NCBI GenBank assembly: GCA_051294905.1
Contig: CM119380.1
Coordinates: 22,940,001-23,004,000 of the forward strand
Length of the DNA: 64,000 nucleotides
Reading direction: 5' to 3'
Source: Botryllus schlosseri
Lineage: Eukaryota
Shown: positions 10,229 through 15,161 of the stretch, one piece after another
How the letters are laid out: the number at the start of each line of letters is the position of its first letter
Numbering within the stretch: the first letter of the stretch is position 1
Position numbers and translations under genes: made by a program
Notes under the pieces: generated by a model
The model's input: only the letters and a program-made list of their open reading frames with translations
Database searches by the model: none
Told to the model about the DNA's origin: nothing

Positions 10229-12393
10229 ATGTACAGTATGCCTGGCAGGGTCTGAAATAAGTCCACAACACCTTCTAATATTCTGGAGAGAAATATGAAG
10301 TTCAGCCGTGGTTCATACTGCATGCGTAAACGGATTTTTCAAAGTCAGTAGTTACAAATTTAGGATCACATATCTTAGGGTGGAGCGATATCTTTAGAAT
10401 GAAGGAATAAGACTTAGCAATCTGCTATGACAATACCAATGTCTCTGTAGAAGAAAATCCAACGTCGATGGGGGTGAAGACGATTTTCCTCCATTTTAAA
10501 CATAATCCAGTTCCCAACCTTATTTTGACTTCATGTATAATATATGTGCGTACGACAGAAGTACACGCAATGTCATATCACCAAGTCGTTCTTTAACTAT
10601 GAATGCTATCAAAGATGTGCATGTATCAGAAAAATTATTGAGCTTATTCACGTCATAATAGGATGCTGTCCATGCTGTAATCGTGATTTGTAACCATAAT
10701 TAAATACGACGATTACAACGTCTTCAACTGATCGTAATCCACTAATTTTGAAAAATCTAAAGTAGTCTCAATCGATAATTTCGCAAAAATAATCGATTGC
10801 TTAGTAACAGCATGATTACTCGACTTCATAGTTTTACAAGGACTATGACATAAACTGAAAAACGGATAGTGCGATGTATCATGTTATTGATTTGACAGTA
10901 GAAGTGTCGGATTTGTCAACATCTCTGCTCATGATTACATCATTAATATGACCAACGCATATCCATTGCGTTGGCACGAATTAACCGCACGTAGCCAAGT
11001 AGTAGCTATGCATTCGATTGCAAGATTGAGAAAATCACCGCTATGCCATATTCCTGGTCATCAACAGGTAGGCTACCACTACCTCGTATAAGGAGCTTAA
11101 AAATCCCCACCTTTTCTAGGTTTCAGATCGCCAGCGAAAAAAGCTGTGTAAATGAATATCTTGTGACGTAACAGCAAATTACTTCCCAATTTCCAAGAGT
11201 TAGCTTCCTTATGATAGAGTATCACTTAATTGTTATATTGTCTTCCAATATACATGTATTTTCAATGCTCAAGTCCAAGGAAGTCAAATGAATGTCATCA
11301 TTATTACTTTTACTTTACTTTTACTATTACTTTTCATGTGATCGAAATCGATACACGTACTATTTGCAGCAATCACAATCTTATAGTCTCGCTTTTCAGA
11401 AGTAATCGTATAGTCGATTACATTGAAGCAGTATTAACCGCTACATCGTATTAGAATAAGGTGTATACTGTATATAGTAGTTCAAGTAGCACGCAAACAT
11501 CAGGAATTATTCTCTGTTCCTATATCTCTATTCGCGCCTTTGTATTCGGAGATCAATCCGCATAAACATTGGTTTACGGCCCCGCGCAGTGTGAGTTATG
11601 TACATTAATACACGCATATGATCGTCAATAACATTTAGCATATATGCTTTTGGTGATCACTGAAATGGATTTTAACGAATATCACAATGTTACTATATAT
11701 GCGTCTCGTAATAATAGCAAGGTGCATGCAGACAATATCCGTTAATCGAGATCCTCCTTCGTGCCAAATACTTCCGATGAATGCATCCAACTATTATGTA
11801 TTTTTATCTGTGTTGTGTTGACTTTGTGGAATTTGTGATTTGCATGAGGATTTTCTCCCTAAACATACTCGCGAAGTTGACATCGTGAGCCTAATGGTTT
11901 TATGCTGGAATTTAGTTTCTCAATGGTTACCAAAATTATATCCCGAAATCCAGCACAATAATGAAAGGACTTGCGGATTCTGCTGCGCACTGTTACGCAC
12001 TTTCCCTCGATTTGCAATCGATGCTGTGTCATTGATTATATATTGTCACCAAAGTTTTGGAAATTGCAACATGATCCAAACAGTACTTTGTTTTTTTTTT
12101 GCTTCCGTGATGTAATGTTATGTGTGTCTCGAATTGTTAGTAATTGCACGATGTAACTGATGGTGAATGCAGGAGTAGAATAACGATGGCTAATTTGAAT
12201 TCAAATATATATTCTTCCAGAGCAGAGTGTGACGGTTTGATATAGACCTTCTTAATATCTGCGGGTACAGGTATCAAACTAGCGCCACGCAAGTGAGAAC
12301 GTGAAACTGGAATAATGCTAGAGTATTGTGCGTAGAGGTCAAACGTTGGTGCGTCTACGCAGTACTATTCCAGCGTAGCGTTGCCAGTCGACT

Positions 12394-12455
12394 ACGTCAC
12401 GAGATGACGTTCACTTGCTCGCTAGCGGCAAGATACTACTTTCCTCATATAAATA
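12394..12455 (+). promoter_or_regulatory. Putative promoter: two CRE/ATF-like half sites and a TATA box
   Basis: ACGTCA at 12394-12399, TGACGT at 12405-12410, TATAAATA at 12448-12455, about 100 bp upstream of the signal-peptide ATG. Confidence 0.5.
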
Positions 12456-12557
12456 GACTATACGTCCGGCTATGGACATCCGGTGATGGAACATAAAGGC
12501 AGTGGAGATGTAGTGAAAGTATCAATTCATCAATCGCAGTCCGAAGAGCAACAATTA

Positions 12558-13079
12558 ATGGAATTAATATATCTTCTCACATTCGTTTACTTGGGATTTA
12601 GCACTGTCGAATCGGCGGCTATAAAAACCTGCAAAGAGAAAAGTATACGGTTCGAAGTCGCGACTGATAGAAGAATGTATCCATCTGTAAATGATGCAGG
12701 GGAGTTGGAGTTGATCCAGTCTCTGCCTGAGAAATGGTGCCGACTGCACACAGAAACGGAATCTGACGGTACTGAAGGATGGATGTTTACGCGTCTCATA
12801 GAGAAGGACGACCCAAGATGGGCATGGGCATTGACTGTCACAATGGACCATAAACTGGCCGCAGAACCACTCGACACATCAACGTTGATAGATGTACAGT
12901 CCAACACTGTGTGCAACAATCGCACATTATTTTATGTAGAAGATGAGAAAAGGAACCAAGATAAAAGATTCATTAAAACATGCGACGGAAAATACCTGGC
13001 AATATCCGAGACTGACCCTGACAATGTTTTCCAGTTTGTTGACAGCGCTCGAGATGCAACTCCAGTTGAAATTGAGTGA
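12558..13079 (+). CDS. Intronless secreted protein, 173 aa, candidate IL-1/FGF-like beta-trefoil
   Basis: Longest ORF in the window; MELIYLLTFVYLGFSTVES-AA signal peptide; 4 Cys; NRT sequon; TATA upstream and AU-rich region downstream. An in-frame upstream ATG at 12486 would add 24 aa. The gene is well supported; the fold call is inference. Confidence 0.75.
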   Translation: MELIYLLTFVYLGFSTVESAAIKTCKEKSIRFEVATDRRMYPSVNDAGELELIQSLPEKWCRLHTETESDGTEGWMFTRLIEKDDPRWAWALTVTMDHKLAAEPLDTSTLIDVQSNTVCNNRTLFYVEDEKRNQDKRFIKTCDGKYLAISETDPDNVFQFVDSARDATPVEIE

Positions 13080-13288
13080 CATCGTCACGAGCCAGAATAC
13101 AGAGGCGGCACGCTATGGCGTGAGAGAAAATATTTCCATGTTTTATAGAGACTACAAAGTAATATATTTTACAATATTTATTATAACATGCACTGTAACA
13201 GCGATGACATTGTGCTATGCAAAACCTTTATAGTTCCTTATTTTTTCACGTGTGACTGTGCTTCTTTCCTCAAAATTTTATAATTTAT

Positions 13289-13705
13289 GTATTTTACGGT
13301 TCAAATGCACATATTTACATATTTATTATTCTATTTATTCAATATCTTTAATATGAATATATATATATATTTCTTCCTATTTTATAAATTATTTATTATT
13401 TATAGAAGATTTATACGTTTATAAATTATGAATTTCTCATAAATACTAGTACACATTCGATTTATATGAATATTGTGTGAATTGAGATCATGTGTAAGTA
13501 TTTTACGGTTCAAATGCACTTATTTACATATTTATTATTCTATTTATTCAATATATTTAATATGAATATATATATATTTCTTTCTATTTTATAAATTATT
13601 TATTATTTATAGAAGATTTATACGTTTATAAATTATGAATTTCTCATAAATACTAGTACACATTCGATTTATATGAATATTGTGCGAATTGAATTGAGAT
13701 CATGT
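13289..13705 (+). repeat. Tandem duplication (about 209-bp unit) of an AT-rich, ATTTA-rich segment
   Basis: gtattttacggttcaaatgcac...gaattgagatcatgtg occurs at 13289 and 13498 with few differences. Confidence 0.9.
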
Positions 13706-13862
13706 GCAGTGGCGAGATAGCGAGATAACACCAATGGGTGCCAAAAGCCTAGAGGTGGGCCGTGCCATAAGTCGGCAGTTACGAAAAATATGAAGAATAT
13801 CGGCCTGGTGTAAATGACCATAGCAGTCGAAAAACACCATGAATACCCCAAAACAAACAAAC
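13706..13862 (+). mobile_element. Internally deleted tRNA-derived SINE with 14-bp TSD
   Basis: Head gtggcgagatagcg, family 3' body and (CAAA)n tail; TSD aattgagatcatgt at 13692-13705 and 13863-13876. Confidence 0.85.
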
Positions 13863-15161
13863 AATTGAGATCATGTAGCGGCAGTTGAGAACATGGGCCT
13901 GGCATGTGTGAATTGCTGGTGTCGTGTTTGCTAGGATATTGTAGATGTGGCATTCGCGTAAATGATAATTGAAAATCCATGACAGTTCTAGGCAATTACG
14001 GGGTTGTAGGATGCGATCTCCAACAATTGGGGGAGTAAACGAGGGCCAGGCCGAATGACAGCGAAGAGAGTGAGAACATAACGAGAATGACTATGAGATA
14101 GGAAGTAATGGCATATTGAGTGTTTATCGCCACAACCGTTAATTCGCACTGTTTGACTCCGTTTATTCTCGATGATAGGCTGGATTTTTCTGAATGCAAA
14201 TTGAACGTGTAAAATAATTTCCTCTTGCCACAACGCTCCTGAACCAGTAATTGGCAATCAGACCGCTGTCGTGGTTCTCGGCGTCGAAATTGGTACAAAT
14301 ATTGGATATTTGAGGCCAGTTTCAAGTCATTCTCTGCATAGTAAATGCTAACTGTTTCGTTGCAATTCACTTAATGACGACAATTGAAGACGTCGTGCCA
14401 TTGCGACAGTTAGTTGCAATCTTTCGTCAAACGAATTTGAATCACATCTTCTTCGCAATCTTGGTTTGCAGCTTGTTACTGGCACGCTTTCACAACTCAG
14501 AGCAATCAAACAACCTTGTAGTCAAAGCACCTTACAGTCACCGCACGATACAAGTTACTGCATCGCTCAAGATACAAACCAATCATGTCGGGAGTTCTGG
14601 AAAAGGTTGATTTGAACGGAGTGTCTGGCACGTGTCCATTGTATTTAAAATACTCGTTTCCTAGGTAGTTAAGACACTGAAAGGAATTTTGTATTTTTAG
14701 CACAACACGCCGTTTCAGATAGACCTCACGTTGTGTGAATAAACCAGATTGACGTCATTACGAAATGTTCGTCATTTCATAGCAATGTTATATGGTACTG
14801 CCCATAATGCAAGTCATAATGATTGATGGCGATCGCTGTGATGCATTATTTTCCTGCGAATCTAACTAAACGCCTTTTCATACCCACGCAATTGAATGGT
14901 TTTGTACCTGAGAGACCCGTGTCTGTTATGTAACCACTATTCTTCTGAGGAACACTGCAAGCCTTCGGGAAACCTCAAATTTTCACTGAATCATAAAAAA
15001 CTAAATCATACCACAATACACATCTAATACATTACCATAGATTAGTGATGTACAAAACAAACTGTGCATCAACAGAGTGGTAAAGAACAAAGCCATTAAA
15101 ATATGATTGCATGCAAAACGAAAACAATATAATGAGTATTTATTGCAAATATGCTGTTACC

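Follow-up and report, generated by a model that had tools for sequence, protein, structure and literature searches.

A Single-Exon Botryllus schlosseri Gene for a Small, Putatively Secreted Protein, Probably of the Beta-Trefoil Class, Weighed against an Interleukin-1 Identity

Tunicates are a gap in the known distribution of interleukin-1 (IL-1). IL-1-like activities have been reported from tunicates since 1989, and the molecule behind them has never been cloned (PMC9020223). A recent survey described IL-1 homologues, called 'IL-1anc', across Eumetazoa, but Ciona, Botryllus and Styela yielded no candidate (Fontenla-Iglesias et al., Nat Ecol Evol 2026, PMC13736523). We analysed a 64,000-nucleotide stretch of the Botryllus schlosseri genome (the window hereafter; contig CM119380.1, C10:22,940,001-23,004,000), in which a first-pass annotation had marked the open reading frame (ORF) at 12558-13079 as a gene for a secreted, intronless protein with the beta-trefoil fold of IL-1. 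Is this gene the missing tunicate IL-1? Judged from its sequence, it is probably not a cytokine gene. On balance it is best explained as a lineage-restricted ascidian gene, with two members so far, whose product would be a secreted, disulfide-braced extracellular binder made of a single trefoil and of a lectin-like or effector-like kind.

The gene and its single relative

The features of the gene are as follows, numbered from the first nucleotide of the window.

12558-13079, plus strand: complete single-exon coding sequence, 173 codons plus TGA, uninterrupted
12486-12488, plus strand: in-frame upstream ATG, an alternative start 24 codons 5' of the ATG at 12558
12558-12614, plus strand: predicted signal peptide of 19 amino acids, with cleavage after VES by the -3/-1 rule as read from the sequence
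12615-13076, plus strand: mature acidic domain of 154 amino acids, probably a beta-trefoil
12951-13052, plus strand: best-conserved subrepeat, mature residues 113-146 (RFIKTCDGKYLAISETD...VFQFV), where the hhalign, hmmsearch and Kunitz_legume matches overlap

The 522-nt frame opens with the ATG at 12558, closes with the TGA at 13077-13079 and is unbroken in between; no longer ORF occurs in the surrounding 20 kb. At 43.7%, the frame is richer in GC than its flanks (36-38%). The N-terminus of the predicted product, MELIYLLTFVYLGFSTVES, resembles a cleavable signal peptide in composition: the mean Kyte-Doolittle hydropathy over residues 3-14 is 2.15, and the predicted cleavage site carries Val at -3 and Ser at -1. 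The 154-residue mature part has a net charge of about -10, four Cys residues at mature positions 6, 42, 100 and 123, and an NRT sequon at mature residue 102. As far as a secreted product and an intronless frame are concerned, the first-pass annotation was borne out.

The upstream ATG at 12486 has a good Kozak context (G at -3, G at +4), and initiation there would place 24 extra hydrophilic residues ahead of the leader. This codon appears to lie only some 6-8 nt from the transcription start site that would be expected from the TATA-like element described below. Because of this proximity, and because the coding sequence of the single relative is called from a Met homologous to that at 12558, we kept ATG 12558 as the preferred, provisional start. 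Two tiny out-of-frame upstream ORFs begin at 12472 and 12508.

Two protein libraries were searched, one of 5.8 billion clustered proteins and one of 1.8 billion representatives. One clear relative was found across both: P0001, a protein of 173 amino acids that is 51-54% identical to the Botryllus protein and is encoded by a single uninterrupted 522-nt ORF on a 5.9-kb contig assembled from SRR25569784. The two proteins have the same length and share their start and stop. All four Cys and three of the four Trp residues are common to both, as are the blocks KWCRL, EGWM, DTSTL, VCNNR, RFIKTCDGK, SETD and VFQFV. Identity reaches 74% in the leader (14/19) versus 48% in the mature part, where residues 1-35 and 71-98 are 32% identical and residues 36-70 and 99-154 about 60%. 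A conserved leader joined to a variable mature part would fit the pattern of fast-evolving secreted effectors. The sequon noted in the first-pass annotation is present but not conserved, since P0001 reads NRI at the same site.

No further relatives could be added to this pair. A word-indexed search with the profile of the two sequences, a search with the repeat-unit region of the bacterial protein P0002 (see below) and a scan of metagenome contigs all failed to deepen the alignment. When the B. schlosseri genome (495.5 Mb, 219 contigs) was searched for paralogues, neither a second copy of the gene nor, with a relaxed profile, any other relative was detected. An origin as a retrocopy was considered and rejected, as the genome is without any parent paralogue. 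One single-nucleotide polymorphism was seen in the ORF, at position 12767, and it is synonymous. The retention of the frame and of key residues across ~50% divergence argues for purifying selection, and on this ground the gene is a real one.

Fold and likely role of the mature domain

A beta-trefoil is the likeliest reading of the sequence signals from the mature part, which are weak but convergent, and we regard this fold as probable. Three kinds of signal are involved. The first came from Pfam. With hmmscan at E values up to 10, the protein had a sole match, to Kunitz_legume (PF00197), at E 0.036 and 14.4 bits (gathering cut-off 25.9). The match spans residues 107-162 and covers the same region as the subrepeat at 12951-13052.

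The second kind of signal came from P0002, the sole other HMMER match among the 1.8 billion representatives (E 5e-4) and the one protein from outside the tunicates whose similarity to the Botryllus protein is significant library-wide. P0002 is a surface protein of 1320 amino acids from the metagenome-assembled genome of an uncultured Ruminococcaceae bacterium (CABSLQ010000017.1). It consists of six tandem units of about 143 amino acids, followed by Ig-like and CBM_X2 domains and a C-terminal anchor, and its Pfam matches are Fascin, FRG1, DUF7910 and CBM_X2. BLASTP aligned it with precursor residues 29-157 over 133 columns at a pairwise E value of 1e-7. In hmmsearch with the pair profile, the P0002 motif vfIKa-dGkYl was matched in three repeat units (profile positions 107-150), with one weak extra stretch elsewhere (profile positions 54-76). 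The hhalign comparison of the pair profile with the six units gave a probability of 84.8% and an E value of 6.5e-6 over 34 columns, corresponding to mature residues 113-146. The motif opens the fascin-like repeat units of P0002, and the subrepeat at 12951-13052 corresponds to the hairpin motif that comes first in trefoil units of the fascin/FRG1 kind.

The third kind of signal came from a protein language model. The nearest neighbours of the Botryllus protein were RicinB_lectin_2, CDtoxinA, Ricin_B_lectin, Inhibitor_I66 and CCL2-like families (0.94-0.88), and those of P0001 were the same families plus I48 and AbfB. With the ricin-type families taken out, the next in line were Fascin, FRG1 and DUF7910, and in one cluster FGF was hit as well. 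All the neighbour families are members of the trefoil clan. The best signals are those of lectin- and fascin-type trefoils, the very kind of match that the first-pass annotation had set against its own cytokine proposal.

Several results weigh against the reading of the gene as a functional, secreted trefoil protein. AlphaFold2, run on the two-sequence alignment with either orthologue first, returned a mean predicted local distance difference test score (pLDDT) of only 38.1 and 36.6. Foldseek searches with both models against the PDB and AFDB clusters gave no E value below 0.2. A threefold internal repeat was not detected when the profile was aligned with itself by hhalign; the one off-diagonal match, residues 3-35 against 120-152 at E 0.099, is a weak echo between two IKTC-led segments. 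There is no QxW motif in the Botryllus protein (P0001 has one, QKW), and hhalign against 25 bacterial (Bacillota) RicinB_lectin_2 (PF14200) domains gave probabilities of 1-2%, which is not significant. The language-model recognition score was 2195 versus a usual 2300, and language-model lists have a high false-consistency rate, in that shuffled sequences may also give family-consistent lists. It is because of these language-model caveats that we hold the trefoil to be probable and no firmer. Lastly, the gene left no trace in the RNA data sampled. About 6-13% of each of three bulk RNA-seq runs labelled as this species was compared with positions 11300-14800, and zero reads fell on the ORF; likewise, none of the indexed RNA runs was listed as containing the gene sequence. 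The first-pass annotation had named the lack of a transcript as evidence against its proposal, and none was seen in these samples.

Direct matches of the protein to the Pfam ricin (PF00652/PF14200) or Fascin families were not obtained, NCBIfam gave no match for it, and PDB sequence searches with both the protein and the profile were without matches.

It is possible, and in our view unlikely, that the product is a conserved secreted protein of some other all-beta fold, and that the trefoil signals reflect a short hairpin motif shared with true trefoils. The alignment-based similarity does fall largely within about 35 residues, no confident trefoil came out of AlphaFold2, and the recognition score of the language model is low. 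However, the three kinds of signal are independent and all lead to a single clan, and the BLASTP alignment with P0002 extends beyond the hairpin. A domain of 154 residues also fits a trefoil in size, as does the strand count of the low-confidence AlphaFold2 models, which were all-beta with 10-11 strands.

As to function, the main rival is a secreted beta-trefoil protease inhibitor, either of the Kunitz soybean trypsin inhibitor (STI) type or like the fungal I48 and I66 inhibitors. The only Pfam match of the protein points this way, the language-model neighbours include clusters of Inhibitor_I66 and I48, and a leader with two putative disulfides would be as in STI. The Pfam score lies below the gathering cut-off, however, P0001 has no Kunitz_legume match in Pfam, and no Kunitz_legume genes were found in the genome. 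The disulfide pattern of STI is also unlike a Cys spacing of 6, 42, 100 and 123. We therefore consider an inhibitor improbable.

A lectin-like or effector-like role is what we favour on balance, because the nearest language-model neighbours are of this kind, because the leader is conserved and the mature part variable, and because there is a precedent in Ciona, where a fast-evolving ricin-type trefoil protein is expressed in testis (PMC3036616). In such a scheme the cleavable leader would take a small acidic protein into the secretory pathway. The mature part would fold as a single beta-trefoil, braced by two disulfides from the four conserved Cys residues, and would bind its target extracellularly, in the manner of a lectin or an effector. 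Its variable loops might then recognise a glycan or another extracellular ligand, and the protein would not act as a receptor ligand of the IL-1 or FGF type.

Flanking DNA and transcription

The first-pass annotation had also described a TATA box with sites resembling the cyclic AMP response element (CRE) upstream of the ORF and AU-rich elements downstream of it, and had taken them as the profile of an inducible cytokine gene. The elements in question are listed below.

12395-12409, plus strand: two CRE half-sites, CGTCA at 12395 and TGACG at 12405
12448-12454, plus strand: putative TATA-like element TATAAAT, 110 nt upstream of the ATG at 12558
13286-13692, no strand assigned: AT-rich tandem duplication of two 208-209-bp units that are 96-98% alike, a putative part of the 3' untranslated region

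The TATA-like element and the half-sites are where they had been reported, but a full CRE is absent upstream of the ORF, and at least three CRE half-sites occur in about 4% of 400-bp bins. The AU-rich elements are real in number: 13080-13700 holds 17 ATTTA motifs, whereas bins of equal size across the window average 1.6. However, 16 of the 17 lie beyond 13285, inside or beside the tandem duplication, which was found at no other locus of the genome, and the 1.1 kb after the stop codon contain neither AATAAA nor ATTAAA.

The only stretch of 11300-14800 that was covered by RNA-seq reads is a high-copy dispersed repeat at about 13742-13860. Its word depth in run X1 is about 29,000x. Reads align to the repeat at 95-99% and then pass into dissimilar sequence; past about 13788, some turn into runs of A. 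The repeat looks like a transcribed element of the short interspersed (SINE-like) kind; ARAGORN found no tRNA in it. Just downstream, at 13996-14370, there is a minus-strand ORF of 124 amino acids, and contigs of run X1 cover 13867-14247 at a depth of 11. The contigs of this run were considered as evidence of expression and rejected, as they cover coding and non-coding DNA alike and at low depth; the run is probably genomic DNA.

Should the ORF be regarded as silent or dying, unexpressed and without function? The missing reads, the missing RNA run and the missing poly(A) signal would all agree with this. On the other hand, the frame, the length, the leader, the Cys residues and the Trp residues have been kept at about 50% amino-acid divergence, which would be unexpected without purifying selection. 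The RNA sampling was shallow, so the gene may still be expressed, perhaps in a particular tissue or after a particular challenge. We accordingly give a silent ORF little credence.

Interleukin-1 and comparison with known trefoil proteins

The IL-1anc survey (PMC13736523) leaves a gap that a genuine tunicate IL-1 would close, and the gene would be of wider consequence only if it were proved to encode a cytokine. The same survey makes the view of IL-1 ligands as a vertebrate innovation, on which the first-pass annotation had drawn, outdated. A mature length of 154 amino acids and an all-beta prediction are compatible with an IL-1, and secreted members of the family do exist: IL-1 proteins are generally without a signal peptide, the exceptions being lamprey PmarIL-1.1 and IL-1Ra (PMC13736523). 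IL-18 chains, together with fascin chains, also stood on top of the Foldseek PDB list of the first AlphaFold2 model, though at E values of 0.2-2 and a template modelling (TM) score of 0.23. These rows were reproduced neither with the second model nor with the AFDB clusters, and we treated them as noise.

The direct tests did not bring the two together. The Pfam IL1 profile (PF00340) had no match on the protein at E values up to 10 and found nothing in a six-frame search of the genome. This negative is weak on its own, as IL-1anc proteins also escape HMMER (PMC13736523). IL1 was, in addition, never among the language-model neighbours or in the other lists of sequence similarity. The strand-for-strand register with IL-1beta that had been proposed by eye proved to be at the level of chance. 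Its nine block pairs hold 15/65 identities, with a BLOSUM62 sum of 47; 80% of shuffled mature sequences allow a collinear placement of the blocks that is equal or better, and the optimal placement on the real sequence has a z of only 0.95. The (F/L)ES motif in strand beta9, largely conserved in IL-1 and IL-1anc (PMC13736523), is nowhere in the Botryllus protein or P0001, which read AEP and MVP, respectively, at the aligned site. Of the earlier proposal, a trefoil is still likely from the convergent signals above, but its tie to IL-1 is unsupported.

The gene structure differs as well. The trefoil of IL-1 and IL-1anc is encoded by 3-5 exons with two conserved intron phases (PMC13736523), whereas the Botryllus frame is a single exon. 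IL-1anc proteins usually have an N-terminal PDZ domain (PMC13736523); neither this nor a pro-domain is present here, and the hydrophobic leader starts at residue 3. IL-1anc genes are frequently linked to IL-1R-like genes (PMC13736523). Among the best candidates listed, TIR matches in the genome were on C13 only, while the window lies on C10. Given all this, it is very improbable that the gene is a tunicate member of the IL-1 superfamily, that is, a secreted ligand or antagonist like IL-1Ra that has lost its introns and uses an Ig-TIR receptor, and scarcely any credence is left for the missing tunicate IL-1 or an independent trefoil cytokine, secreted and intron-less, that would signal through or block such a receptor.

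As to FGF, the Pfam profile (PF00167) had no match on the protein. In the genome it found FGF-like exons on C6, C11 and C14 above the cut-off, and on C16 below it.

Two other observations were made in the genome. At C13:3075887-3093673, TIR-domain matches occur three in a row within 18 kb, and two of the three contain in-frame stops; the locus may represent a small group of genes or pseudogenes for TIR receptors. On the minus strand of C9 (15029126-15029521), an exon-sized match to Pfam Cellulose_synt at 26.3 bits, above the cut-off, fits the tunicate cellulose synthase.

The evidence thus argues against this gene being the long-sought tunicate IL-1-like molecule. What it appears to be is a nearly orphan, taxon-restricted secreted protein; its probable fold is very common, so that such a protein is unsurprising. 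The result is useful for annotation, and the gene is a candidate for a fast-evolving lectin or effector that would take part in the immunity or reproduction of ascidians.

Like the IL-1 superfamily, the protein has a trefoil-sized domain of probably the same fold class, and like IL-1Ra and PmarIL-1.1 it has a signal peptide. It differs from the superfamily in its single exon, its four conserved Cys residues, the lack of (F/L)ES, PDZ domain and pro-domain, and the absence of a linked receptor gene in the searches made. The Kunitz-STI inhibitors (PF00197) are secreted trefoils with two disulfides and are the only Pfam family that registers for the protein. Fascins are cytosolic actin bundlers without disulfides, whereas the Botryllus protein has a leader and four Cys. 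Its similarity to P0002 covers a short stretch that does not line up with the ends of the repeat units there, but the hairpin motif v-f-I-K-x-x-d-G-k-Y-L...F-x-f-V is common to it and the fascin/FRG1/DUF7910 repeats. Ricin-B lectins have a (QxW)3 signature and another Cys pattern. In spite of these differences, the ricin-B-like single trefoils, such as the arthropod '16 kDa salivary peptide' cluster, RicinB_lectin_2 and CdtA/CdtC, are about 140-180 amino acids long and often secreted, and the ricin-B-like proteins and CdtA/CdtC are the nearest language-model neighbours of both the Botryllus protein and P0001 (0.93-0.94).
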